From positions 1,509,514 through 1,573,513 of the forward strand of contig NW_003314287.1 in NCBI RefSeq assembly GCF_000143415.4: a DNA stretch of 64,000 nucleotides, in the 5' to 3' direction. The notes under the pieces are model-generated. The model had not been told where the DNA came from. It made no database searches and saw only the letters and a program-made list of their open reading frames with translations. The translations under genes were made by a program, and so were the position numbers. This DNA comes from Selaginella moellendorffii (lineage: Eukaryota; Plantae; Lycopodiophyta). This document shows positions 10,101 to 60,228 of this stretch, one piece after another (positions within the stretch are counted from its first letter, which is position 1; each line of letters begins with the position of its first letter).

Positions 10101-10262
10101 GGCGGCAGATCGAGGGGCTCCTCCTCCGCTCCCGTGCCGCCCAATCCCAAGAGCTGGAGCCCATCGGATCCAAACACAGTGCTGCGAGTTCTCTGCCACC
10201 GCGCGGACGAGACGGCCTCCAAGTTCCTCAAGAAGGCGTACGGCCTTCCCAAGAGAGTGTGA
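7153..10262 (+). CDS. PATROL1: Protein unc-13 homolog / PATROL1-like (DUF810, MHD1-MHD2), multi-exon
   Basis: LKEAAYEIILVA, HWADGYPFNVHLYQVLL, AYIRSSVRSAF, LCVRINTL, FKADGDGLP, WSPSDPNTVLRVLCHRADETASKFLKKAY across ORFs 7144-8499, 8540-9088, 9061-9306 and 9246-10262 joined by GT-AG introns. Confidence 0.9.
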
Positions 10263-10295: not shown

Positions 10296-10389
10296 GGATA
10301 TTCTTTAGAATGTTGCTTGACGGACTAAGCTTTAACGCTGGCGGTATATTCTGCGCGGCTTTTTCGCGCCGTATATACCCCGTATATGC
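10296..10389. promoter_or_regulatory. Cluster of 4 P1BS (GNATATNC) elements upstream of CYSTM
   Basis: GGATATTC 10296, GTATATTC 10344, GTATATAC 10371, GTATATGC 10382. Confidence 0.7.
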
Positions 10390-10657: not shown

Positions 10658-11168
10658 ATGGCGGAGGATCCCAAATATGCCTATCCCGCGCAGCCGGCGT
10701 ATGGCTATCCCCCCCAACAAGGTATGCGTAATCTTCCCTCTTGCCTCTCTTGTTCTTCCAGCATTTCCATTCGCCGCTAGAAATCTTTTTCTTGGAGTTT
10801 GTGGCTTTCGATTCCTACGATCATGATCTTTACTCTCTTGCGGATTTGTCTCCAGGGTATCCGCCACAGGGCTATCCCCCGCAAGGCTACCCGAATCAAG
10901 CGCAGGGAGGATACTACCAGCAGCCACCGCCAGTAGTTCCACCGCCGCAGTATCAACAACAAGCTCCTCCGCGCAAGAACAACAGCAATTTCTTGACTGG
11001 ATGGTAAGCTTTCGATCGATCGCTCGAGCTTTTCCATTTTCTCATCTGGATTGGATGGAGCCTGACACCATCGATTTTTAATTTCTTCCCTGTAGCTTGG
11101 CCGCGATGTGCTGCTGCTGCCTCTTGGATGACTGCTGTTGCGACCCCACTCTCTTGATCATCGACTGA
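10658..11168 (+). CDS. Cysteine-rich transmembrane (CYSTM) domain protein, 3 coding exons
   Basis: MAEDPKYAYPAQPAYGYPPQQ|GYPPQGYPPQGYP...NFLTG|CLAAMCCCCLLDDCCCDPTLLIID*. Confidence 0.9.
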
Positions 11169-17975: not shown

Positions 17976-19385
17976 TCACGCTCTCAACTTCCTAGAGAAG
18001 ACGACGTACATTGGATCCGTTCTTCCGGGATTTGGCGAGATATCCAAGGCCTGAAAGAAAGCTCTGGCAACATTGACGAGAAGAAAGGCAGGCTTGGTTT
18101 TTCACGTACCTCGGCTGGTTCGTATCCTCCAGCGTAATGGAAGTAAGCACCAACAATCCAGACGTGATCCACGTCCCCAGTTGCCGTCCACACGGAGACT
18201 GCCTTCGTCCAGAAGCATCGATTCGAGAAACTAGAGGCAGCGGCGAGATTTATCTTATCCGAAAGCAGGCGAAGCACGTACCTCAAGCAGGCTAAACCTC
18301 CGGGCTTAAGTACGCGATTCATCTCCTTGAAGACATCAATGGGCTTGCTCAAGTAGTCCACACTGACCTGTGAAGGAAAAGAGAGATGGAATAAAGCGAG
18401 GAGCCAGGCACACGGAGAAAAGAACGAAGGAAAAGCAACCTGGAAAAGAGGCCAAGCAGCCTTACCGTGTTTGTAATCACGTCGAAGGAATTGTCCTCAT
18501 AAGGCAGGCGAGGATTCTGGTTTAGATCTTGCACCAAGTACTCTGTTAGCACCTGCGAAAGAAAAGAGAATATATATATATATATAAGCTCTCGAGAAAC
18601 GAGGTGAAAGATTTTTCTATTCTAAAGGAGCTGGAAAGGAGCGAACGGAAGAACGAACAAAAAAATAAAGCCTGGACCTTACTGGGTTCCGTTTGAGCTC
18701 TTCCTCGTTTAGTCCTTGTCCGGCGATGCGTTGCTGTGCGTAGTTCTTGGGATAGTGGCTAACCTGTGAGTCAGATCGTCATGGCCTAGCGAAACAAAAA
18801 GAAAGGAAAAAAAAAATTCGAAAGAAAAATCTCGCGTACCCAGCTGCTACACATGTCTAGTAACGCCACGCCGGGAGTGTTGCTTGGTGGGAACACTGTT
18901 GCGTAGTATTTAGTGAGCGCCTGGATCGCAGCGTCGTCAATGTGAGTGACGAATCTGGGCGTGGAGTAGAAGAGCGTGTCTGGTGATCTTGAGAAACAAA
19001 GAACGTCTTCCATGTTAGCGAGAGCATTAGCTATCAATGTGGAGCTTACTCGTCATAACGCTGGAAATCTTCCTTCTTGAAGGGGAATTCCTCCGGCCAC
19101 CCCACGTTTCTTAGAATCTGGAGAGAAGGGGGAGAAATCCTGTGGAGATCGATCGAAATATCCGGGAATTCTTACCTCCTCTGCCTCGGATCTCTTCTTG
19201 GACCTGGCGGCAAACGCTGGATCCCCGCCCTGCGGCTCCATGATTCCAGCCGCCGCCGCTGCGGCGCCGAGCAGCGCCCGGCGCAGGAATCTCGGCGCTA
19301 GAGACGCGCTAGCTCGAGAGGATGGCGTCGGCGACCTAGAACAAACGCTGCGCCACCGGTAGCTCGCAGTCACAGCTGCCGCCAT
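17976..19385 (-). CDS. SAM-dependent methyltransferase type 11, probable plastid transit peptide (At4g29590-like)
   Basis: WPEEFPFKKEDFQRYDE|SPDTLFYSTPRFVTHIDD...LLDMCSSW|VSHYP...GLNEEELKRNP...DLNQNPRLP...SFSNRCFWTKA...DPMYVVFSRKLRA*. Confidence 0.9.
18571..18586. repeat. (TA)8 intronic microsatellite
   Basis: Direct reading. Confidence 0.8.
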
Positions 19386-21291
19386 AGCTCCCTGACCTGA
19401 TACGTGGCAGGGATTATTCGATGCCGGGAATATGCTTCCGGTTTGAAAAATCAAGGCCAACAGTTTGATTTTTTAACTGTCATGCCCCGTTAGATATTGT
19501 ACTCATTTCGAGAATAGAAGGTCAAGTTCTAAATTTTCTGGTGAGCTGTGCCGACCAATGACAACGTGCTTGATCATAAATTGAGTCATTTTCATAGTAT
19601 TAGTAATATGTTTTAAGAGCACCAAATGCCTGGTGGTGAGTGTGAAGAAAGTTTCCGCTGGAACTCGAAGGAGTGGTGGTTTTAAAATTGGCAAGCTTCT
19701 CATATTCTTCTCGTTCTGTGATCGCCTCATCTTCATCTCGTCTAGTTCAATGAATGCAAAGCTTGACAAATTCAGATTGACTTTAGCATAGTTAACGTGT
19801 TCCTTGGGAAGATTTAGGAGCAAGCCAAAAAAAAGGCATGGTGGTCGTGCTGGTGGTGGTAAAGCGACCACCGCATGAAGAAACATTACAGGCCAAGGGA
19901 ATTGCATTTGTCAAAGAGGGCGCAACTTAGGGCCCCCCAAACTCAAACAAAAAGGGTGGCTTTGTCAAAGGAGATTGAATTGAAACGCTTTTGTTTTTGC
20001 AAAGAAGGAGAAGTAGCTGTTCTTCTGCTGTGCTCCCCAAAAAAGGCATTGAATGGAGACAATGACATATATAATGGCTAGAATTACAAAATCTGCTGCA
20101 CTCACTTGCCAATGCCACCCACCCCAAGCCAACCAGAAGAGAGGAAAAACCAACACATTGGGGCCAGCCCCAAAAAGAGAGAAGCCCTAGAAACCTGCAG
20201 CAACAAAAGGCCATCCTCCCATAAAGATCATTCAACTCCCCTTTGCAACAAACTCTGTACTCTTGTGTGCTCCTTTCTTGTGTGTGCTGTAGGGTGGCAT
20301 GGGTGCAACATGTAAGGTGGACATGCATTACAGAATCTTGTTCCCCACTGTTGATCAAGGATTAAGGCGAGTGTAACAAAATTCCATGGAATCTATGACG
20401 AGCTCGTGAGGTGTGTGTATACACGCACATGATACGCTAGAATGAAGGGTATATTTGTACACGACATAGTTGCTTCCAGGGAGGATGTCAATCTTCGTGG
20501 AGCCCGCGAGAGCACAAAAAGTAGGAAAGAAAAAAGTGAGGAAAGAGAAAAGGTGGCGAGGTTTCACCGGGCCAAATCGCCAAAAGCTGGGAAGGCGAGA
20601 ATAAAAAAAACAAGATTACCTCTCCATAATTCCCGCTAGTTCAAACACGTACGGAGAGCCCGGCCTGCCGTACACCTGGCCACCCAGTTTAACTCTTCAC
20701 GGCTATGGCGGCTCTCTTTGTTCCGGGGGGTGTGTGTGATATTTTGGCGAGCGCAGCGCTTGGAGAGCGCGCCCTGGCTCCTGGAGCCCATGCCGCGCGC
20801 TAGGGTTTGATGGCGAATGGGTGGCGATCGGCGGTGGCAGGAGTGGCAGCAGCGGCGCGGCATCGTCTAGGTTTGCGAGCTGCCAGATTTTGGCACATTG
20901 CAGGGAGCTGGGGCTGGGAATCGCGGCGCGCGGTCGCGAATCGCGAGCGCTAGAGCGGGGATCGAGCGAGGTCAAACAATGGAGGAGCATTCTTGGTTTT
21001 ACTTGTCGGGGTAGGATTCCAATGCGGCACGGGTCAACGCATCGCAAGCGGATTTTGGGGGCGATCCGGGGCCCGGATCGGGGATAGGACCGGGAGTTCC
21101 GTGTGCCGTGCTCGCGGGGTGATGAAATCCCCCGGGAGTCGGCGATCGATCGAGGCAGCGGCAGCGGCAGAGTGGTGTAGCTCTTCTTCCTAGTTGATAG
21201 CGCGACTCACGAGGCAATGGGATCACAGATCTAGCAGTGACAGGTGCCCGGACGGGGAATGTGCGCAATTCTGGGGAGATAGGGGGCTATC

Positions 21292-24238
21292 ATGTCACTG
21301 GGGCTGGCATGGGCGATTCTCGCGCTTCTCGGCGTCGTCACGATCCTACCGGCGGAGTCGCAGACGCTGCTGGCATCCGAGGCCTACGCGATGCGGCACC
21401 TCAGGTACTCGCTGAGAATTCGGGACTTCTACTGGCCCAAGACGCGGGATCCATGCCTGGATTGGAGAGGAGTTCTTTGCGAGAATGGACGGGTGGTGAG
21501 CATCTATCTCTCCGGGTTGAAGAGGACGCTGGTGGGGATGGCGCGGCCGACGCTGGCGCTGGACAATCTCCAGGGACTTCCCGCGCTGCGGCTGCTCAAT
21601 GCCACGGGATTCGTGATGCTGGGGACGCTCCCGGATTGGATTGGCCAGCTCTCGGCATTGCAAGTGTTGGATTTCTCGGCGTGCTCGATCAATGGGTCGG
21701 TTCCAGGGGGAATTGGTCAGCTGGGCAGCTTGCGGAGGCTGTCGCTCGCAAGGAACGATCTCATGGGTGGAATCCCGGCCAGCATCGGGAATCTCTCCCG
21801 CCTCGAGCTGCTCGACCTCAGTGGAAACATGCTCAGCGGGGTGCTGCCGCCGGAGCTCGGGAGGATGGCATCGTTGAGAGATCTCGACTTGAGCGGCAAC
21901 ATCTTCTCGGGTCCCATTCCAGCTTCTCTGGCAGTGAGCTCCTCGTCGAGCTTGCGGAGCGTGAGGCTGTCCGATAACAGGCTTGACGGGTCGGTCCCGG
22001 AGAATCTCACGGGGTGGTCGACGCTCCAGGAGCTAGCTCTCGGGAAGAATTTGCTCGCGGGAGAGCTGCCTGGAGCTCTGCAAGATCTTCGCAACTTAAC
22101 GCTCTTGGACCTCTCGCTCAACAATTTCACGGGGACGATACCGCCGGGGCTGGCAAGTCTTTCGAGTTTGCAGTCTCTGGACCTCTCCAACAATACGTTT
22201 TACGGGCCGCTGCCTGCGGCGGTGTCGTCTCTGCGAGGACTGCTCGTCTTGAACGTCTCGGACAACTTTCTCAACGACACAGTGCCGGCAGGGACCGTGG
22301 CCGGCGCCATACTTAGCGAGAACTGTTTCGTGAATGCGAGCGGGCAGCGTTCCTTGAGCGACTGCCAGGCGTTCTACGCTGCCAGGGGCCTGGTTTTCCA
22401 AAACGCTTCGTCTTTCAACTTGCCGACGCCAATGCCGACGAGAAGATCAAAGTCCAAGCCCCGCCACCTTGCCGTTATACTGGGGGGAACTTTTGGTGGT
22501 CTTGGGCTGGTTCTCCTGGTGGCTGCGCTGGTTCTTCTTATACGAAAGCACGAGAGGCGGCCGGCTCGAGAGCCTCCAAAGAAATCGGACGAGGCGATGG
22601 CTGGTGGCGCCGCCGCGGGTGCTGGCGCTGGTGCAGCGACGACGAGCGGGACGGGCCAACCCGTCGTGCCTCCCGCCGTTGCTGTCAAGATGTCGAGTAT
22701 CGGAGAGTCGTTCACGTTTAGTCAGCTAGTCCGGGCAACTCAGGAGTTTTCTTCGTCCAACTTCATCAAGGCCGGGCACTCGGGCGACTTGTATCGAGGT
22801 GTTCTAGACGGCGGCGTGCTCGTCGTCGTCAAGAGGATCGAGGTTGCCAAGATGAAGAAGGATTTGCTCACTTTGGAGCTCGAAGTTTTCGGCAAGGCGT
22901 CTCACACCAGGCTGGTTCCTCTCCTCGGGCACTGCCTGGAAATGGACGAGCTCAAGTTTTTGGTGTACAAGTACATGCCCAACGGTGATCTGGGACAAGC
23001 ACTACACAAAAAGGTTGTTCCAAGCCCACCCGCGGATATATTGCAGTCCCTGGACTGGATCACAAGATTGAAAATCGCGATTGGAGTGGCAGAAGGCCTG
23101 AGCTACTTGCATCACGAGTGCGTCCCTCCACTTGTACATAGGTACGTTCTTGCGGTTTAAAGGTTGCCGTTACGTAAAAGCTGATGGCGCATTTTCCTTC
23201 TTCCTTGCCATGGCAGGGATGTACAAGCGAGCAGCATTCTTCTCGATGACAAGTTTGAGGTACGGCTGGGAAGTCTGAGCGAAACGCGGGAGCAAGGAGG
23301 CGAAGCGCAGCCTGGGTTGATAACTCGGCTGCTGAGATTGTCACAGTAAGTTTTTTTTTAACGCTTTTCTTTGCATTCTTTCTTTAACTGTCGTTCTAAG
23401 TTTTCTCGTTTGTCGCTGCAGGACGACCGAGCAAGGCGATCAAGGTGAGAAAAAAATTTAATGTTTCCGAAGGTCTCCAGCTGCTCATGCTTCTTTCTTG
23501 TTTACAGCAGGCTCCGCGGTGGCATCATGTGCATACGATGTTTATTGCTTCGGGAAGGTGCTGCTGGAGCTGGTGACGGGAAAGCTCGACATCAGTGGCA
23601 CCTCGGATCCAAACGCCGACGCCTGGCTGGAGTGGGCTCTTCCACTCATCGACCGGCACAACAAAGAGGGAATAATGAAGCTGGTGGACCCGTCGCTGAT
23701 AGTGGACGAGGACCTGCTCGAGGAGGTGTGGGCGATGGCCATCGTCGCCAAGCTGTGCCTCCACGGCCGGGCGTCCAAGCGGCCGCAGATCCGCCACGTC
23801 CTCAAGGCGCTGGAGAACCCGCAGCGGGTGACGAGGGAGGAGAACTTTAGCTCGTCGCTGCGCTCCCGGACGTCGTCTCACAGCTCGTGGAATGCGTCGC
23901 TGTTTGGGAGCTGGCGGCACAGCTCGTCGGAGAACGTGATCGCGTCCGGGGTGCTGAGGGAAGAATACGTGGGTGGTGGCGGAGGTGGCGGCGGCGGTGG
24001 TGGCGGTGGTGGCGATCCCAGCAGGAAGCACTCGGGAACGTCGCACTCGCAGGGGTCGATCACAGGGGAGCAGTCGTTCCACCGGAGGCCCGGGTCGAGC
24101 GAGATCTTTCCCGAGCCGGTGGAGGACGTTCCAGTCAAGGCGTCGAGCTTGGGATCTGGGGACAACAATGGCAGTAGCAACAACAACAGTGTGAAGCTCC
24201 GGCAGTATCAACAGCAGCAGCAGCAACAGCAGGTATGA
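21292..24238 (+). CDS. LRR receptor-like kinase, At2g16250-like (atypical kinase motifs), 4 exons
   Basis: Signal peptide, DPCLDWRGVLC cap, LxxLxLSxNxLSG repeats, TM segment, IKAGHSGDLY, HRDVQASSILLDDKFEVRLGSLS, CAYDVYCFGKVLLELVTG; poly-G and poly-Q tail. Confidence 0.92.
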
Positions 24239-24875
24239 GAATGATTGACACACACAAGAGATTCACGAGGAGAGGCTTGCTTTATATTCTTTCGCAATAA
24301 GATCCCCCGAGAACTTTGGAAGAACACGAAGAAGAAAACACACACACACACACCCAAGGTTGGTCTGTTCGTTCGTTTTGTTCCCCCGAATTGGTGGAGC
24401 AACAAAGAAATCCCTGTAGCATAAACTTTCTTCTTTTCTTCTCCTGCTCCATCATAAGCTAGTCTTTTTCTCTGTATTTTTTCTTCCTGTTGGATCCAAG
24501 TTTTGATGATAAAAAAAAAGAGATTTTTTTTGCTCTGGTTTCTCCGCCGAGAAGAAGAAAAAAAGAAAAAGAAATCTTTCAGGAGAGAAAGAACTTAGCT
24601 TAGCTTTTGATGCATTGATTTCATCCAGTCCAACAACGAGCGAGACTTTTTTGCCTCCACGTCGTTCGTGGTGGTGATGGAATTGAAGTTGTTTCTTCCA
24701 CCTTGATTGATTATTTATGCCATGCGCAGTCCTGGTACCTGAATCCTGATAGATAGATAGACGAGTCACTTCTTCCGTCAGGAAACATATTAAAGAGACT
24801 GGCAGTAGAATTGATTGGTACCTGAGAGGAAAGTGTGAGCTTGCCACGCCTCGCTCGCTCGCTCGCTACGTTTTC

Positions 24876-25916
24876 TTACTCGGACGACTTCTTGAGGAAA
24901 CCGGCCTCTTCATCCTCCTCCTCCTCCTCGGCCTCCTCTTCCTTGTCCCCCAAACTCTCCATCGGCTTGGACACCACCACCTCGGATGGCTGGCTACTCG
25001 GCTTCGGCATGGCCGTCGACTGCTGGTACAAAACCCCGCCAACAATCGTGAGCAGCAAGAACAAGATCCCGACGGTGCTGGCGTGCTTGTCCCAGATGAG
25101 CACGTTGATAATCACCGTGAGCAGCTTGTTCACCACCCCGGTGACTGTAAATGCGGTGGCCGAGATGGCCTTCCTGGCCGCGAAACCGAAGAAGCTGATG
25201 GCCAGGCCAAAAACGCACGAGAGCGCCACCGAGAAGACGGCCTGGAACTGGAACAGGCTCTCCCAACTCGCCCGGGCCACGTCCGAGTACTCCCCCGTGA
25301 CGATCCAGAAGAATGGAGCCATGGCGAGCGAGAGGAGATTGTTGTAGTAGACGAAGCCCCAGGTGTTGAGCCCCAGGTTGGTGACCATATGCTTGATGTA
25401 CACCATCTCGGTGGTGATGGTGACGAGGTAGGCGGCGGCCCACGAGTAGGCGGTGACCGAGAAGGCCGAGTCGGTGAGCACGTAGCCGATGGCGCCGCCG
25501 AGGATGACGAGCAGCGCCGCGAGCGTGTAGCGCGAGGGGAACTGCTGGCGGCGGAAGAAGGTGTCGGCGATGGCGACGAGGAGCGGCGTGGAGGAGCGGA
25601 AGACGATGAAGGTGTCGACGTTGGCGTGCTTGAGGAGGTGCGTGTTGGTGAAGATGGCGAGGTAGAAGACGAGCGCGGCGGGGAGGAAGCGCTTGACGGT
25701 GTCCCAGGCGAGCGCGTCGTGGTGGAGGAGGCCGGCCAGGCCCAGGAGGTGGACGCCGCCGGCGCTGGTGAGGTACTGGAGCGCCGTGAGGAGGCTAGGG
25801 TATGGGAAGTAGGTCACGGCGTACTTGTTGATCACCGCCAGGAGGCTCGAGCACAGCGCGTAGCCCAGCACCAGCAGCGCCGTCGTCGACAGGACCGCGC
25901 CGCTGTTCTTCATCAT
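24876..25916 (-). CDS. GFT1: Golgi GDP-fucose transporter 1 (GONST4-like), intronless
   Basis: GYALCSSLLAVINK, ANVDTFIVFRS, LNTWGFVYYNNLLSL, SATAFTVTGVVNK (GxxNK GDP-sugar motif). Confidence 0.88.
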   Translation of the reverse strand: MMKNSGAVLSTTALLVLGYALCSSLLAVINKYAVTYFPYPSLLTALQYLTSAGGVHLLGLAGLLHHDALAWDTVKRFLPAALVFYLAIFTNTHLLKHANVDTFIVFRSSTPLLVAIADTFFRRQQFPSRYTLAALLVILGGAIGYVLTDSAFSVTAYSWAAAYLVTITTEMVYIKHMVTNLGLNTWGFVYYNNLLSLAMAPFFWIVTGEYSDVARASWESLFQFQAVFSVALSCVFGLAISFFGFAARKAISATAFTVTGVVNKLLTVIINVLIWDKHASTVGILFLLLTIVGGVLYQQSTAMPKPSSQPSEVVVSKPMESLGDKEEEAEEEEEDEEAGFLKKSSE

Positions 25917-26196
25917 CGCGCCGCGCCTCTCCTCTCGCCGCCGTCCCCTACCTGGTGCCGTGTAACCTCCACCAAGCGCGCGCGCGAGATCCGCCGATCC
26001 GGGAGAGCTGAAAGAGATCGAATCGATCGCCTAGCCCCCGCCGGTCGCGAATCCGGAGGGAAATCTCTAGATCTCGGCGCCGCGCCGTGAGTGTCGTGCG
26101 CGCGAGGAACTCGCGGCTCCAACAAGAAATCGCTGCTACTTTCAAACTGAAAGACAATGTAGGTTTTCTTACTTTTTTGATTTTCTCGTTGGCGGG

Positions 26197-26329
26197 GAAT
26201 ATGCTCCAAGCCGCCATGGCATATTCCTATAGCGGTAGAATATCCTATCATATACTAGAATATACCCCCTCGAGAGTATATTCTAGGCGCGGTAGAATAT
26301 CTTAAATAATATTCCCCTGGGGTATATTC
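26197..26329. promoter_or_regulatory. Array of 6 perfect plus 3 near-perfect P1BS (GNATATNC) elements in the divergent GFT1/CBSX5 promoter
   Basis: GAATATGC 26197, GCATATTC 26219, GAATATCC 26238, GAATATAC 26258, GTATATTC 26276, GTATATTC 26322; one-mismatch copies at 26248, 26295 and 26307. Confidence 0.8.
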
Positions 26330-26375
26330 TTCGAAATGAAGATCATCATCCTTTTTGGAGCCCTTTGGCGTGTGG

Positions 26376-27789
26376 ATGACGCAATTTCTGGAATCGTTCG
26401 AGGTGTTCGATCTCGCGCTGGGTAAGCCGCCGCTCCACTGCCTCCCCTGCAATGCGAGCGTCGGGGACGCCATTGCGATGGCGCGGGAGCTGGGAGTGGC
26501 GGAGATTAGCGTGTGGGACGCCAATCTCGCCAATTGCCTGGGCGTGGTCAACAATCTCGACGTCCTCTGCTTCCTCGCCGCGGATCACACCCTGCTGTGC
26601 GATCTGGAGGCCGCGCTCGCGCGTCCAATCGCCGGGCTGGTGCACAGGAGCTGGATCCAGCGCGTGGATCTCCACGAAAGGTACTTTTATCTATTTGGTA
26701 GATAGAGTATTTCTTCTTCTTCTACATGGATTGGACGTTCTACTATCGTGTAGACTGTCCAAGGCGCTGGAGCTCGTGATCAAGGGCGTGCAGTACCTCA
26801 TTGTCCCTCTCCCCAAGAGATCTCGATCCACTCGCGCGATGGAGTTCGAGAGGAACAGTAGCAGCGCATCCTCGCGCTGGCCTTGCAAGGAAGTGTGCTG
26901 GATCAGCCAGGAGGCCGTGATGCGCTTCCTCATGAGCTGCATAGCCGCGTTTTGCCCGCTTCCACTCTTCACCATCGAGGAGCTCGGGATCATCAACCGC
27001 AGCTTCGCCTCCATCCAGCACGAGGCCCCCGCGATCGAGGCGATCCAGATCATCCACCAGGCCTCCCAGGCGATGAGCGCAGTGGCAATCGTCGTCCCGG
27101 CAACTCCATCACCATCTCCTTCGTCGGCGTCTTCCACTACCGAGAACCAGAGGAAGCTCAAGCTGCTGGGCGATATCTCGTCGTCCACGCTCCGCCGCCA
27201 CGACGAGAATTTCGCCGCCGTCGCCGCGGCTCTCGCCACACTCTCCGCCGCCGACTTCCTCTCGTACGTCCGCGGAAGCAACAAGCGTAGCTCCAAGATC
27301 CTGGGAAAGTTGATCGAAACTCGTCTCGCTCAAAAGGTGGCGGCGGCGGCGGCGGTGGCGGTGGCGGACGAAGATCAAGTTGCAGGAAAACCCCCAACGC
27401 CGCTGGATTCCTGCGAGGAGTCCTCGGACTCGGAGCAGGACTCCCATAGATCTGGAGGACTGACTTCGAGCTTCCAAAACTCTGGGAGCCGCGGCTGCCT
27501 GACGTGCCGGCCGTGGAGCTCGCTGGCGGCGGTCATGGCGCAAGCACTGTCGCACCAATGCGGCTACATCTGGGTGACGGAGTCAGAGAGCGAGAACACG
27601 GTGGTGGGGATTGTGACTTACGTTGATATGATCCGTGTGCTCGTCAAGAAGCTGGAAAAGGTGGGGCGCCTTGGATCCAGCCAGAAATTGTTCTCGTCGA
27701 CGCCAAAGCTGGTCACGCGGCCGGATCAAAGCAGCCAGCAGCCACCACTCGTTCTGCCCGCCGACCACTTGAAGAGCAAGCATTCGTGA
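26376..27789 (+). CDS. CBS domain-containing protein CBSX5-like (SnRK1 gamma-related), 2 exons
   Basis: MTQFLESFEVFDLALGKPPL...ISVWD...DVLCFLA|LSKALELVIKGVQYLIVPL...CWISQEAVMRFL...AALATLSAADF...CRPWSSLAAVMAQALSH...VGIVTYVDM. Confidence 0.88.
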
Positions 27790-28173
27790 AAAAGAGGAGC
27801 TGTATACATTTGTGCGTGTGTATATCTTGTTCGTTCGCTATAAATTTGACAAAGGTTTCAGTAATATCATCTGGAGGAACTATGTATACCTGTGTCGACT
27901 GTCAAAATGTCGGCGATACAATTGCCAAAAGGCCTGTGCATACGAAAACGGAAATTGATGATATCGGGAAAAATAGAGAAAAATAGAGAGAGGGAAAAGG
28001 CTAACCTGGTATTGTCCTGCGAAGAGACTAGCTGTGCCTTGTACCTACGCATGTGGGCAAGTTCCTTTCGGCTAAGAACTGACAAGCATCGAGAAGCTTG
28101 ACTTTGTCTTCTTCTTCTTCTTCTTCCACAAATGGACCAACTTTGAGCTCTCTGTCTCGTTTTTCATTTACAG

Positions 28174-31100
28174 CTATGATGCCGAGTGTTGCATCAACTC
28201 GAACCACTGTCAATTCCAAGAGTTAAAGAGTATATTTGCCGTACAAAGAGGCGTACCTGTCTTAACAAATCTGCCAGTGTCCGGGGGAGTGCCTCAATAT
28301 CCTTTAGAATGACGTAGTAGGGGAATGGGAAGGTGTCCAGGTATTTTGAGAACATCGGTGCTCCATTTGCGAACGTAACAGACTGCATCACAATTGTGGT
28401 CATTGTATTGAAAGGACTCGTACAATACCTGCATGTCCAAGAGAGATTCTTGGGGATTATCCAGGACCAGGAAAGCTAACAGCTGCCTTCTGCTCAGCGC
28501 GTCGCGGACACATCGCCTGAGGCTTTCCTGCAGAAAACACGAGAGTGAGCTGAGGCAACACGTTCGGTGGAATTGACGGACCTTTTCGTGAAACCGGCCA
28601 TCAGCTATGACCAGAACCAGCTGCTGCAAATCCCTTTGCCCAGCCGGTGCATACCGAGTCGCCACCACGTTCAAGAAACGTGTAAGGTACTGCAGCAAAT
28701 CGACCATTGGCTCATCTGATATTGTGTTGTCCTGGCGAAACGAAAACTCCGATATAATCTGGTTCAAAAAGCCAACACCAAAACATTAGACCATGAGAAA
28801 ACCATAAGATTGTAAAATAAGTACCTTGACTGCTGCTTCAGTTGAGAAAGGCTGATCCAAATCATGCAAAAGACGAACATTTCCTTTCTTCCCGAAGCTG
28901 GCCACGGCCATTTGGCCGACCTCCAGTTGCGTCATTCCTCTACATATTGTAAGCAGCGCCTCCAGAGCCATGTGTCCGCAGTGGCTCTCCGACATGCTCC
29001 GAGAGTCATCTAGAGCAACGACGACCTGGTACTGCCGCTTGTTGGGCTTTGTTCGTCGCAGCCATATCTTATCTTTCCTGAACTCACTTGCTACAAACGG
29101 TATAATCTGAAAAATCAAGTATTCAAGGTTTAGTACAGGATCAAGACAATCTGTCACTCACCTTCTTCATGTTTAAGCGTTTGCCCGATTTGTAGTCACC
29201 CTGGAGTCTTGAGGCCAGCGTCGGCTCCAGTATCAAGCGGAGCTGCTCAGCTAGATCTTGAGACAGTCGGCCCGTCAGTTGCTCGTATTTTTGCCAAACT
29301 TTTCTTGCACTCTCCACGTCATTGATGCCTGCTATCACTTCCGTCTCCAACTCTTGCCGAATGACTTGAGTATCGTCGTTCCACATCGAATTCTTTTGAA
29401 AGTTTTCGGGCCTTTCAAAAGAGATGAAACTTCCATCAGCGTGGAATTCTTCTTCGTCACGTGCTGCCGCCATCACCTCCTCTGATTCAGGAGCCTCTTG
29501 TCGTTCTGATGGTTTCTTCGTTGTATACGCTGTTTTGTCGTCCACGTCCATCATCTCCGTCAGTGTCTGCTGAGGTTGCTTGGAAGGACGGTACTCGTCG
29601 AGGGGAATGTTCTCTTCTTCCATGATCTCGTCGCTCTCATGCATCATTTTGCTGAAGTCGTCAGAGAGCTTCATCTGTTCGTCGGTTGCCGCACCCATTG
29701 CTTGTGCATTGCTCTTCTCGTCGTTTGAAACGTACTTGTAGGTGTCATCCTCACAGGTCTCCTCTGGTACGTCCATTTGGAGAGAATTATCAGCTTCTTT
29801 ATCTTGTTCGTCTTCCACCATCCTGGCCCTCTGCTGCCATTTCTTTAGAGCACTGCCAAGACTTCTGTAGGGATTAGCATCGAGCCTACTGAGGTCTTCA
29901 TTTTTTTCGGACTCTGTCGGCAAGCTGGAAGAAGAAGCATAGTTTTCACTGCTGGCTGCCCCGGCACTTGGAGCTGCTTCGTTTTGCTGCTCGTGATTGT
30001 TGTCCCCTGCAGAAGGTTCCTCCCTCTTTGTACCATCCTCGAGGCTTTTTGACAAAGGATTATTTTTCGCCTCTGTCGCAACGCCGTATGCCATGGCACT
30101 TTTGTTGTCGGCGGCAGCATTTTCCGCATCGTCCATGTTTGTGTCCAGGTTCTCAAGTTGAGAATCATGTTGTTTTTCCTCGGCACTGGAAGGCTCCGCT
30201 TGCTTGCTTTCGTCTGTTCCAGCGGGTTCCTCAGTTTTGTCAACTTCTGCTTCTTTAGCTCCATCGTTTCCTGTTCCATTCTCGTCATCGTCGGACTCTT
30301 CTTCTACTTTATCCAGGTCCATGTCCTCTGGTAAGGAATCGTTGACGCCATTATTCGTTTGCTCTTCCTCCATGCTTGGAGCACCTTCCTCATGGTTAGC
30401 ATCTTGTTCCTGTTCGGCCGGGATTTCCTCTTCCATAACATCTATTTCTGCAGGTGATGGTTGTATGCCACTGGGATCTTCAAATGCGCTGTCTTCCGGA
30501 AAGTCTTCTTTATCCTCGGTATGATTCTCCTTGTCCTCGGACTCAACCCGTGATTCCTTGTCTATCGGCTTCTTTTCGTCCAAGTCTTCCTCCTTGTCTT
30601 CTGACGAATCTTCGTTCTTACCCCGTAACTCCAAATCGTCATAACCTGCGTCTTTAACAGACTGTCCCTGCTCAACTGACTCCGTTCCCTCCCGAGACTC
30701 GTCTTCCTTGTCCCACATCTTCTCATCAACCACCTCTTCATTTTCACCTTGTTCTCCCATTTTTGATTCCAGCTTTTCATCACCATCTTCATCTCCGTCG
30801 CTTTCGTTTGACTCGTCTTCACTAACGTCAAACATTTCTCCGTTGAAGTCTTCCTCCATTTCGATTCCTTTGTCAAGCTTCTCATTATCCTTGCGATCCG
30901 TGGGAGCATCCTGCCCAAATAGAAAAACGTTGAAACAACACTCAGTAAGAAAAAGACTTCACCTCGCTTCCAAGGAGTTGTTGCTCGTCTTCTATTTGTT
31001 CACTGACGTCTTTTGTTCCTTGGCCTTCTCCCATACCGGTCCCTTCAGCGGCCTGAAACTTCTCTGATTCTTCGCCATCTTCCTCACGAGCTCCACAAAA

Positions 31101-57675: not shown

Positions 57676-59400
57676 ATGAGCGTCGCAAATTTCTTCACGC
57701 TTGCGCACCGGCATACGGTGGATGTTGAGGAAGAGGAAGAACATCCCGATACACTACTCTTTGCTCGGCAGCTTCGAGCGTGTGGGAAGAAGAAAGATCT
57801 TAAGCAAGCAAAGCGCTTGCATTTCCAAATCACAAACAGCGGCTACCCCCAAAACAGATTCCTCTGGAACATCTTGATAGAAACGTATGGGAAATGTGGC
57901 AGCCTCGAAGAAGCCCGCTGGACTTTTGACGATCTCAAGGACCCCAATATTTTCTCTTGGACAATGCTGGTTGCCGCGTATGCCCAAAACGGGCATCTGC
58001 GAGACGCCAAAGCTCTTTACAACAGCATGCCAGACAAGAACACCATCTCAGCAAACGCGCTTCTAACGGCATTTTCAAAAAAAGGATACCTGCTAGAGGC
58101 ACGAGAGCTTCTTGATCAGATAAGAAATCCATCTCCGACATCATACAACACCATGATTTCAGCGTATGCCCAAAGCGGGCATATGAACAAAGCTCGCAGC
58201 CTGTTTGAGAGCACTGATAAGAAGGACGTGGTTACATGGACAACGATGATACAAGCGTATGCAGAGGGTGGCAACATAGCCGAAGCAAAGATTCTGTTTG
58301 ATCGAGCTCCAAAACGTGACACCATTGCTTGCACAGTGATGGTCACAGCATATGCTCAAAATGGGCATATGAAGGAGGCTAGAGAAGTGTTTGACTCAAT
58401 CCTTATCAAGGATTCCAAAGCTTGGACAGCCATGATCAAAGCTTATTCCAAGGCTGGCGACATAGCCTCCTCAAAGACCCTGTTCGATCAAATGCCACGC
58501 AAAGATATCACAGCACTCACGAGTATGATCTCTACTTACGCCCAGAATGGAGACTTTGAGCAAGCAAAGCTCTTGTTTGATGAGTGCGAGCAGCGAGACT
58601 CCGTGCTCTACGCTGTGATGATGCGCGCTTACTCCCAGCGCGGTGAAGTCGATCAAGCCAAGCTCATGTTTGACAACATCACACACAAAACCATCCTGTG
58701 CTGGAACTCGATTCTAACGGCATTTGTAAAACACGGGAGATTTGAGAATGCCAAGGACGTATTTTTGGACATGCCAAAGCGTGATGTGGTGTCCTGGAAT
58801 GCGATGATCGATGCCTACGGCAAGAATAGGCAGGGTAAAGAAGCGATCAAACTTTTCCACCGGATGGAGGCCGAGGGGATCGATCCGGATGAGGCTACCT
58901 TCGTTACCATGCTCGAGATTTGTGCGACTTTAGCGTCGATCCAGCAGGGAGAAGCCGTTTACAGGAGAATCCGTCGATCCAAGTACAAGAGACACACCAA
59001 AGTTTTGAATGCTCTGATTCACATGTACGGGTGCTGCGGGAGTTTGATACAAGCGAAGGAAGCATTCTCTCGGCTGGGACGACCGGACGAGTTCTCTTTC
59101 ACCACCTTGATGTCCGCTTGTTCTAGGAACGATCACAGCAGGGAAGCACTCGAGATTCTCCCTTACATGATCCTCCAAGGTGTTGATCCTTCTTCCGTAA
59201 CGTTTCTAGTGGTTTTGTCTGCGTGTTCCAGTGCCGGTTACTCGCCTGACGAAGCTCGAGGATGCTTTGTTGCGATGATTGATGATTTCTCGCTGCTACC
59301 ATCCTCTGAGCATTACGACTGTTTCTTTCGTTTCATGCAACGAGCTCAGCCTCGGCTTAGTGCCGAAATGCTGGCAGATGAGCTCGCCGTTTTCAGATAG
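57676..59400 (+). CDS. PLS-class PPR protein rich in short (S/SS) repeats, no E/DYW extension, intronless
   Basis: 574-aa ORF with repeated ..WT.MI.AYAQ.G...A..LFD units; ends EHYDCFFRFMQRAQ...AVFR*. Confidence 0.9.
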   Translation: MSVANFFTLAHRHTVDVEEEEEHPDTLLFARQLRACGKKKDLKQAKRLHFQITNSGYPQNRFLWNILIETYGKCGSLEEARWTFDDLKDPNIFSWTMLVAAYAQNGHLRDAKALYNSMPDKNTISANALLTAFSKKGYLLEARELLDQIRNPSPTSYNTMISAYAQSGHMNKARSLFESTDKKDVVTWTTMIQAYAEGGNIAEAKILFDRAPKRDTIACTVMVTAYAQNGHMKEAREVFDSILIKDSKAWTAMIKAYSKAGDIASSKTLFDQMPRKDITALTSMISTYAQNGDFEQAKLLFDECEQRDSVLYAVMMRAYSQRGEVDQAKLMFDNITHKTILCWNSILTAFVKHGRFENAKDVFLDMPKRDVVSWNAMIDAYGKNRQGKEAIKLFHRMEAEGIDPDEATFVTMLEICATLASIQQGEAVYRRIRRSKYKRHTKVLNALIHMYGCCGSLIQAKEAFSRLGRPDEFSFTTLMSACSRNDHSREALEILPYMILQGVDPSSVTFLVVLSACSSAGYSPDEARGCFVAMIDDFSLLPSSEHYDCFFRFMQRAQPRLSAEMLADELAVFR

Positions 59401-59560: not shown

Positions 59561-60228
59561 TTACAGCCGTCTTTCATGTTCTTACAAACCCTACTCTGTT
59601 TTCGGCATCTCCTAGCGTACGATCTTAAGCGTGCTCATTTTCAGATGAGCAGACGGAGCGGTGGGATAGAAGCGTATGGAAATGATTTAGTGACTGTAAT
59701 ACCGTTTTGAAAGATTCGCATGCCAGTTTATAACTTAATAAAAATAAAAATGCTTGTCTATTTGAATAACATATTTGTTCTTGTATATTATTTTTATAAG
59801 TTTTAATATTTTCATTTTATTATTTATATTAAATTTGTCTTTCTATTATTGGTTTTACCTTTTCAATTTAACCTAATTTTATCAATTAATAAATTTGGAA
59901 ACTAGTTTTTATGGTTGCCATAGATATTAACATTATAAATCGTAGATAACTAATATTTAATATTGGTTTGCTTAAGAAAACCTGTAATGAATATATCTAG
60001 AATATGCTTGGATATTCTGGGATATTCTAACATCTAATAGTTTTTATTTATTTATATTAATCTTATATTTATAATTCATAAACTTTCTTAAACACTTCCT
60101 AGTAAATTCTAGTTTATTCTACTATATTACATTAATAATATTAATCTTGTGTTTATAAATTATAAATATCCAATTGATCAATTGGATTTTTAAATAATTG
60201 TGCAGCAAATTATTTTATTACTTGGTTA

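Follow-up and report, generated by a model that had tools for sequence, protein, structure and literature searches.

Dimeric factors of the PHR1 subfamily bind the P1BS element, GNATATNC, and the PHR1-like proteins of Selaginella moellendorffii have a conserved domain structure (PMC11082045). NIGT1 requires GAATATTC or GAATC (PMC11082045). When P1BS elements stand in tandem, AtPHR1 binds about 50-fold more tightly and dissociates about 30-fold more slowly, and it has been suggested that genes with several P1BS switch off more slowly (PMC5651819). In the EZ2 enhancer of Arabidopsis PLDZ2 and in the engineered promoter 3xM-EZ2Bi, several P1BS lie about 20–30 bp apart (PMC5398999). The latter carries six P1BS between two minimal promoters and gives a strong, reversible and bidirectional response to low phosphate, with raised basal activity; the more copies, the stronger the response and the higher the basal activity (PMC5398999). 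According to the authors of 3xM-EZ2, apart from one light-induced natural promoter, no environment-triggered bidirectional promoter, natural or designed, had been reported (PMC5398999).

Here, we describe an array of the same motif class in a 64-kb stretch of S. moellendorffii DNA (GCA_000143415.2, scaffold GL377591.1), referred to below as the window. The result is a modest one: the array is an unusually dense, lineage-specific case of a well-known motif class.

The array and the promoter it occupies

The array occupies positions 26197–26329, on neither strand in particular, and consists of nine P1BS-class sites, six exact and three with one mismatch, which is also the count that had been made from the sequence alone. 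The exact sites are site 1 (GAATATGC, 26197–26204, with GGG directly before it), site 2 (GCATATTC, 26219–26226), site 3 (GAATATCC, 26238–26245), site 5 (GAATATAC, 26258–26265, followed by CCC), site 6 (GTATATTC, 26276–26283) and site 9 (GTATATTC again, 26322–26329, with GGG directly before it). One mismatch each is found in site 4 (TCATATAC, 26248–26255), site 7 (GAATATCT, 26295–26302) and site 8 (TAATATTC, 26307–26314, followed by CCC). Five distinct exact core sequences are represented, in both orientations. The half-site GAATAT/ATATTC is present in eight of the nine sites; the window contains 40 copies of this hexamer, so one fifth of them are found here. The GC content of the array is 41%, as against ~55–64% in the flanking DNA.

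Sites 5 and 6 form the left and right arms of a palindrome (CTAGAATATAC at 26255–26265 and GTATATTCTAG at 26276–26286), and sites 3 and 7 lie within the first and second copies of a duplicated element, GCGGTAGAATATC, at 26232 and 26289; the sequence-only reading had pointed to both features, and both could be located. The duplicated element belongs to a 27-nt direct repeat on the plus strand (26221–26247 and 26278–26304; 78% identical), which implies that local duplication made part of the array. Tandem Repeats Finder additionally reports a 10-bp unit, TAGAATATAC, within the array. Measured start-to-start, the sites are spaced by 22, 19, 10, 10, 18, 19, 12 and 15 bp. The array had been called phased, a word that can be kept only as description: a test for a period of 9.5–11 bp is not significant in either haplotype (P ~0.19).

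Two divergent genes flank the array. The minus-strand gene has its 346-aa ORF in a single exon (24876–25916) and encodes a nucleotide-sugar transporter (Pfam TPT, 5.8e-15), which is 66–75% identical, over at least 84% of length, to land-plant proteins named GDP-fucose transporter 1 or GONST4. Judged by this similarity, the gene is a GFT1/GONST4 ortholog. Its coding region is intronless, but three of four runs show a 76-nt intron in its 3′ UTR (24745–24820; plus-strand joint CT..AC). The plus-strand gene starts with an ATG at 26376 and has two coding exons (26376–26680 and 26754–27789, the stop codon ending at 27789) separated by a 73-nt GT..AG intron (26681–26753) whose joint is present in four of four runs. 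The annotated product is 446 aa long, with a CBS domain encoded near 27520–27645 in exon 2. For this gene, exons 1 and 2 were searched separately, whereas the Pfam scan and the tree rest on the full-length allelic protein, P0121. P0121 scores 30.1 bits for the CBS domain against a cut-off of 24, and the best non-allelic relatives are only ~39% identical. In a maximum-likelihood tree, P0121 falls with CBSX5-like sequences, apart from a CBSX6 pair, with 100/100 support and on a long branch (1.08). Its placement marks the product as a CBS-domain protein of the CBSX5 clade. The pair of names given from the sequence alone, CBSX5-like and GFT1, is thus borne out, by this placement on one side and by ~70% identity to annotated GFT1 on the other.

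Spliced transcripts of both genes are seen in RNA contigs from four runs, from which we read transcript ends, although such contigs give neither exact starts nor expression levels. The main GFT1 contigs extend 5′ to 25943–26073, which gives a minus-strand 5′ UTR of 25917–26073. Contigs of the CBS gene start at 26345, 26351, 26359 and 26372, which gives a minimal 5′ UTR of 26345–26375 on the plus strand; the first of these starts is 16 bp past the last array site. With main contigs ending at 26073 and 26345, the untranscribed spacer is at most ~270 bp (26074–26344), and the array makes up about half of it. Only low-depth contigs touch the spacer, at ~26043–26200 (X1) and 26121–26287 (X16). The array lies at about −16 to −150 from the CBS start and ~125–255 bp upstream of the main GFT1 5′ end; it ends 46 nt before the CBS ATG at 26376 and lies 281 bp from the GFT1 ATG at 25916, as the sequence-only reading had it. 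With RNA contigs of the two genes ending on either side, the block is the core of a genuine bidirectional promoter, and this part of the earlier claim holds as well.

No canonical TATA box (TATAWAW) is present in the spacer (26074–26345). Site 9 (GGGGTATATTC), 16–22 bp upstream of the first CBS contig starts, may double as a TATA-like element. An out-of-frame upstream ORF of 29 codons plus stop (26336–26425, plus strand) overlaps the main CBS ATG; it probably lies outside the main mRNA, because its own ATG precedes the first contig start by 9 nt. Transcripts of both genes are present in each of the 20 RNA-type runs considered, which come from 8 studies and include no run known to be phosphate-starved; each run contains 67–80% of the words of a 3.1-kb stretch. 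This implies a promoter that is active by default rather than a switch that stays silent until starvation.

At the far end of the CBS gene, spliced minus-strand RNA contigs (27380–28388) run past the annotated midasin stop (~28174), to 27380 or lower, with CT..AC joints at 27570–27621, 27838–27889, 27933–28004 and 28207–28256. These contigs are antisense to about 400 nt at the 3′ end of the CBS coding region, and come either from a natural antisense transcript or from a long 3′ UTR that is itself spliced.

Clustered and isolated sites

In the window as a whole, 23 exact GNATATNC matches are found against 8.9 expected (sd 3.1), a count reached in none of 100 shuffles, and the excess comes wholly from three clusters, namely the main array and two others. 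For the 133-bp block itself, 20,000 dinucleotide-preserving shuffles give a mean of 0.2 exact sites and a maximum of 3, against the 6 observed; of the GAATAT/ATATTC hexamer there are 8 copies, where 0.44 would be expected. As background we used seven unrelated S. moellendorffii loci, which together cover 157 kb and roughly 45 genes and have a GNATATNC density of 0.32 sites per kb. At that density, the Poisson probability of at least six sites in 133 bp is ~8e-12, a figure that stays below 1e-3 once every position of the 106-Mb genome is counted.

The background loci contain one cluster of at least three sites and none of at least five. With the single exception of the gene at this cluster (locus L011), the ~45 annotated background genes lack a cluster; among them are genes for condensin, CSN7, a proteasome subunit, a syntaxin and an ABC transporter, and many PPR genes. 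The idea that GNATATNC clusters are a general promoter element can be rejected as a rule, with only one cluster in 157 kb, albeit in a small sample. Counting the two other clusters of the window, a few per cent of promoters carry a cluster. Such rarity suits a restricted regulon better than an element common to promoters in general.

Clustered sites are also distinct in kind from isolated ones. The half-site GAAT/ATTC is present in 14 of 17 clustered sites and in 18 of 56 isolated sites (p = 5e-4), and GGG/CCC flanks are present in 5 of 17 and 0 of 56, respectively (p = 4e-4), counts that are partly non-independent because of local duplication. A further unit, GCGGTRGAATAT, recurs in the main array and in the L011 cluster. 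Isolated matches are mostly GCATATGC (20 of 56), and many lie inside annotated PPR gene ranges (L006, L007, L010), so that PPR coding sequence inflates any raw count of P1BS in Selaginella.

The second cluster of the window has four exact sites, GGATATTC, GTATATTC, GTATATAC and GTATATGC, at 10296–10389. It begins 34 bp past the stop codon of a PATROL1-like gene (which ends at 10262) and lies ~350–450 bp upstream of a proline-rich ORF (10741–11007) with repeated YPPQG, a putative CYSTM gene. Two of its sites have CCC flanks like those of the main array. The sequence-only reading had grouped the main array with a P1BS cluster at CYSTM, and a cluster does stand upstream of this CYSTM-like, putative gene. 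The third cluster, at 60000–60027, consists of three exact sites spaced exactly 10 bp apart (GAATATGC, GGATATTC and GGATATTC) in a stretch of 34% GC downstream of a PPR gene (57676–59400); no gene start was identified near it. The sole background cluster, four sites at 18370–18513 of L011, lies ~600–750 bp upstream of a phosphoacetylglucosamine-mutase-type gene (19126–21412). Its tandem units, GCGGTGGAATATTC and GCGGTGGATATAC, are similar to the GCGGTAGAATATC units of the main array. The gene next to it belongs to nucleotide-sugar metabolism, as does GFT1.

Candidate factors and the phosphate question

Which factor reads the array? The close likeness to 3xM-EZ2Bi makes a PHR-type homotypic array the best reading. 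We hold it with about even confidence that the block is a homotypic binding-site array for a dimeric GARP factor of the PHR1 (MYB-CC) subfamily; both the factor and the phosphate response are what we infer here. Such an array would form the core of a short, ~270 bp bidirectional promoter, and one array would drive both the CBSX5-clade gene and GFT1. Belonging to a palindromic class and flanked by two divergent starts, the sites of a single array could serve both genes. Many adjacent sites would lead to high, slowly dissociating PHR occupancy, which in turn would give a sizeable basal output in both directions. Low phosphate would then free PHR from SPX, and output would rise further.

It is also possible, if somewhat unlikely in our estimate, that the sites are functional but are read by another factor that recognizes GAATAT, in which case the array would govern expression of a constitutive, tissue-specific, nitrogen-linked or circadian kind and not a response to phosphate. 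Such a reader could be a MYB-CC/PHL-type factor acting constitutively, a KANADI-type GARP factor, a NIGT1/HHO repressor or an RVE-type MYB. KANADI binds VGAATAW, and this motif matches 8 times. GAATAT is common to every strong site, whereas the other half varies. The extended flanks, GGG/CCC and the GCGGTRGAATAT unit shared with L011, are not features described for P1BS. Expression of both genes in 20 of 20 runs is in line with such a factor, yet fits the high basal output of a PHR array equally well. Against other readers, GAATATTC, the NIGT1 palindrome, is found in none of the nine sites, and the spacer (26074–26345) contains no GAATC, evening element or LUX site. Moreover, six sites fit the full dimeric GNATATNC, which a reader of monomeric half-sites does not need. 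Even without a phosphate response, this is a short promoter built almost wholly of one GARP motif.

Homologous promoters bear on the same question. The ortholog comparison that the sequence-only reading had proposed shows the sites not to be conserved: P1BS and GAATAT are both missing from the upstream 1 kb of the Selaginella paralog in both haplotypes (L004, L005), of the Sphagnum homolog (L012) and of the Marchantia paleacea GFT1 ortholog (L003). As far as these promoters allow us to judge, the array is lineage-specific. Their lack of an array counts in favor of a reader other than PHR.

Returning to the PHR-type reading, we found no paper linking CBSX5/6 to phosphate starvation, none linking GFT1/GONST4 to it, and no study of S. 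moellendorffii under phosphate starvation. The proposed connection of phosphate, adenylates and fucosylation therefore has no support beyond the motif. CBSX5 appears among carbon-starvation and bud-dormancy genes in one paper, which has no bearing on P1BS. That energy sensing is tied to fucosylation via the array is speculation. A broader proposal, which we consider unlikely as a whole, is that Selaginella has built complete short promoters out of very dense P1BS arrays, with six to nine sites and an extended flank grammar (GGG/CCC and GCGGTRGAATAT units), and that one of them ties phosphate status to a fast-evolving CBSX5-type protein, putatively adenylate-binding, and to Golgi GDP-fucose import. 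If so, the PHR regulon would have been extended in this lineage, and the promoter would be the first natural bidirectional one driven by phosphate.

Origin of the array and comparison with known systems

The second haplotype, on scaffold GL377599.1 of the same assembly, allows the array to be compared with its allele. There, the array has seven exact and two near sites: in place of the near-site TCATATAC it carries an exact GAATATAC, the outcome of a 10-bp insertion plus a C>A change, and the eight other cores are unchanged. The only indel in the array between the haplotypes is exactly 10 bp long (AATGCGTCAG, at 26248), or about one helical turn. Of five substitutions within the array, one makes a site better, and the rest are confined to the 61 bases outside the cores. 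This comparison hints at constraint on the cores, with five substitutions only; AT-rich cores lacking CpG may mutate less, which may partly explain their retention.

Alternatively, the array could be the neutral product of local duplication or slippage of an AT-rich unit of 10–20 bp, with other elements driving the genes. We regard this as improbable. The three copies of TAGAATATAC, the 27-nt repeat with its copies 57 bp apart, the 10-bp indel between haplotypes and the lineage-specific occurrence of the array all speak for it. However, the repeats account for part of the array only, which has five exact cores in both orientations, and no core has been lost in either haplotype, although substitutions amount to 3.8% within the array and to 5.7% in the spacer beside it. 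In addition, the array fills about half of the untranscribed spacer (26074–26344), where there is no other candidate element or TATA box, and clusters with a like flank signature are found at unrelated loci.

That a piece of a MITE, or of some other dispersed repeat, inserted between the two genes to give the block is highly improbable: short inverted matches do flank it (GGGGAATAT at 26194 and ATATTCCCC at 26309), but these are P1BS cores plus flanks, and no target-site duplication is evident around the block. When the 196-bp block was compared by BLAST with S. moellendorffii sequence sampled over 221 kb, nothing beyond its own locus and the allele was returned. This makes a high-copy repeat family unlikely, a low-copy one being compatible with such a sample, and leaves the sequence-only reading clear, within those 221 kb, of the dispersed repeat it had named as its own refutation.

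We come back, then, to a PHR-type array and its closest relatives. NIGT1/HHO target sites resemble the array in GARP family and in their overlapping motif class (PMC11082045), but differ in that both GAATATTC and GAATC are absent from the spacer. In comparison with EZ2, none of the sites of the Selaginella array is the optimal GAATATTC. EZ2-type elements combine two P1BS, separated by a 21–28 bp spacer, with two accessory motifs, GCAYCAAA within that spacer and TTTGG/TTTGC on the 5′ side; here, the start-to-start distances of 18–22 bp correspond to 10–14 bp between cores, and neither GCAYCAAA nor TTTGG/TTTGC is present in 26074–26345. As in PHR1-target promoters, GNATATNC sites are present, proximal and outside the main transcripts. 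The likeness extends to PHR1 targets with tandem P1BS, which have adjacent GNATATNC sites in the proximal promoter, and by analogy high-avidity, slowly dissociating PHR binding would be expected (PMC5651819). That binding study compared one site with two; the Selaginella array has nine. Unlike classical PHR1 targets, the CBSX5-clade gene and GFT1 are not known phosphate-starvation genes. If the promoter does respond to phosphate, the two would be unexpected outputs of phosphate signaling in an early vascular plant, in the form of a CBSX5-type protein and GDP-fucose import. The 133-bp element would then also offer a compact means of studying how site number and spacing affect the basal level and dynamic range of PHR targets.

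The nearest likeness is to 3xM-EZ2Bi, in that the Selaginella array places six to seven exact sites between two divergent starts, in this case natural ones. Unlike EZ2 and 3xM-EZ2Bi, it is a natural array in a lycophyte, with nine sites in 133 bp, some of them only 10 bp apart. Were it responsive to phosphate, the engineered 3xM-EZ2 bidirectional promoter would have an equivalent in nature.
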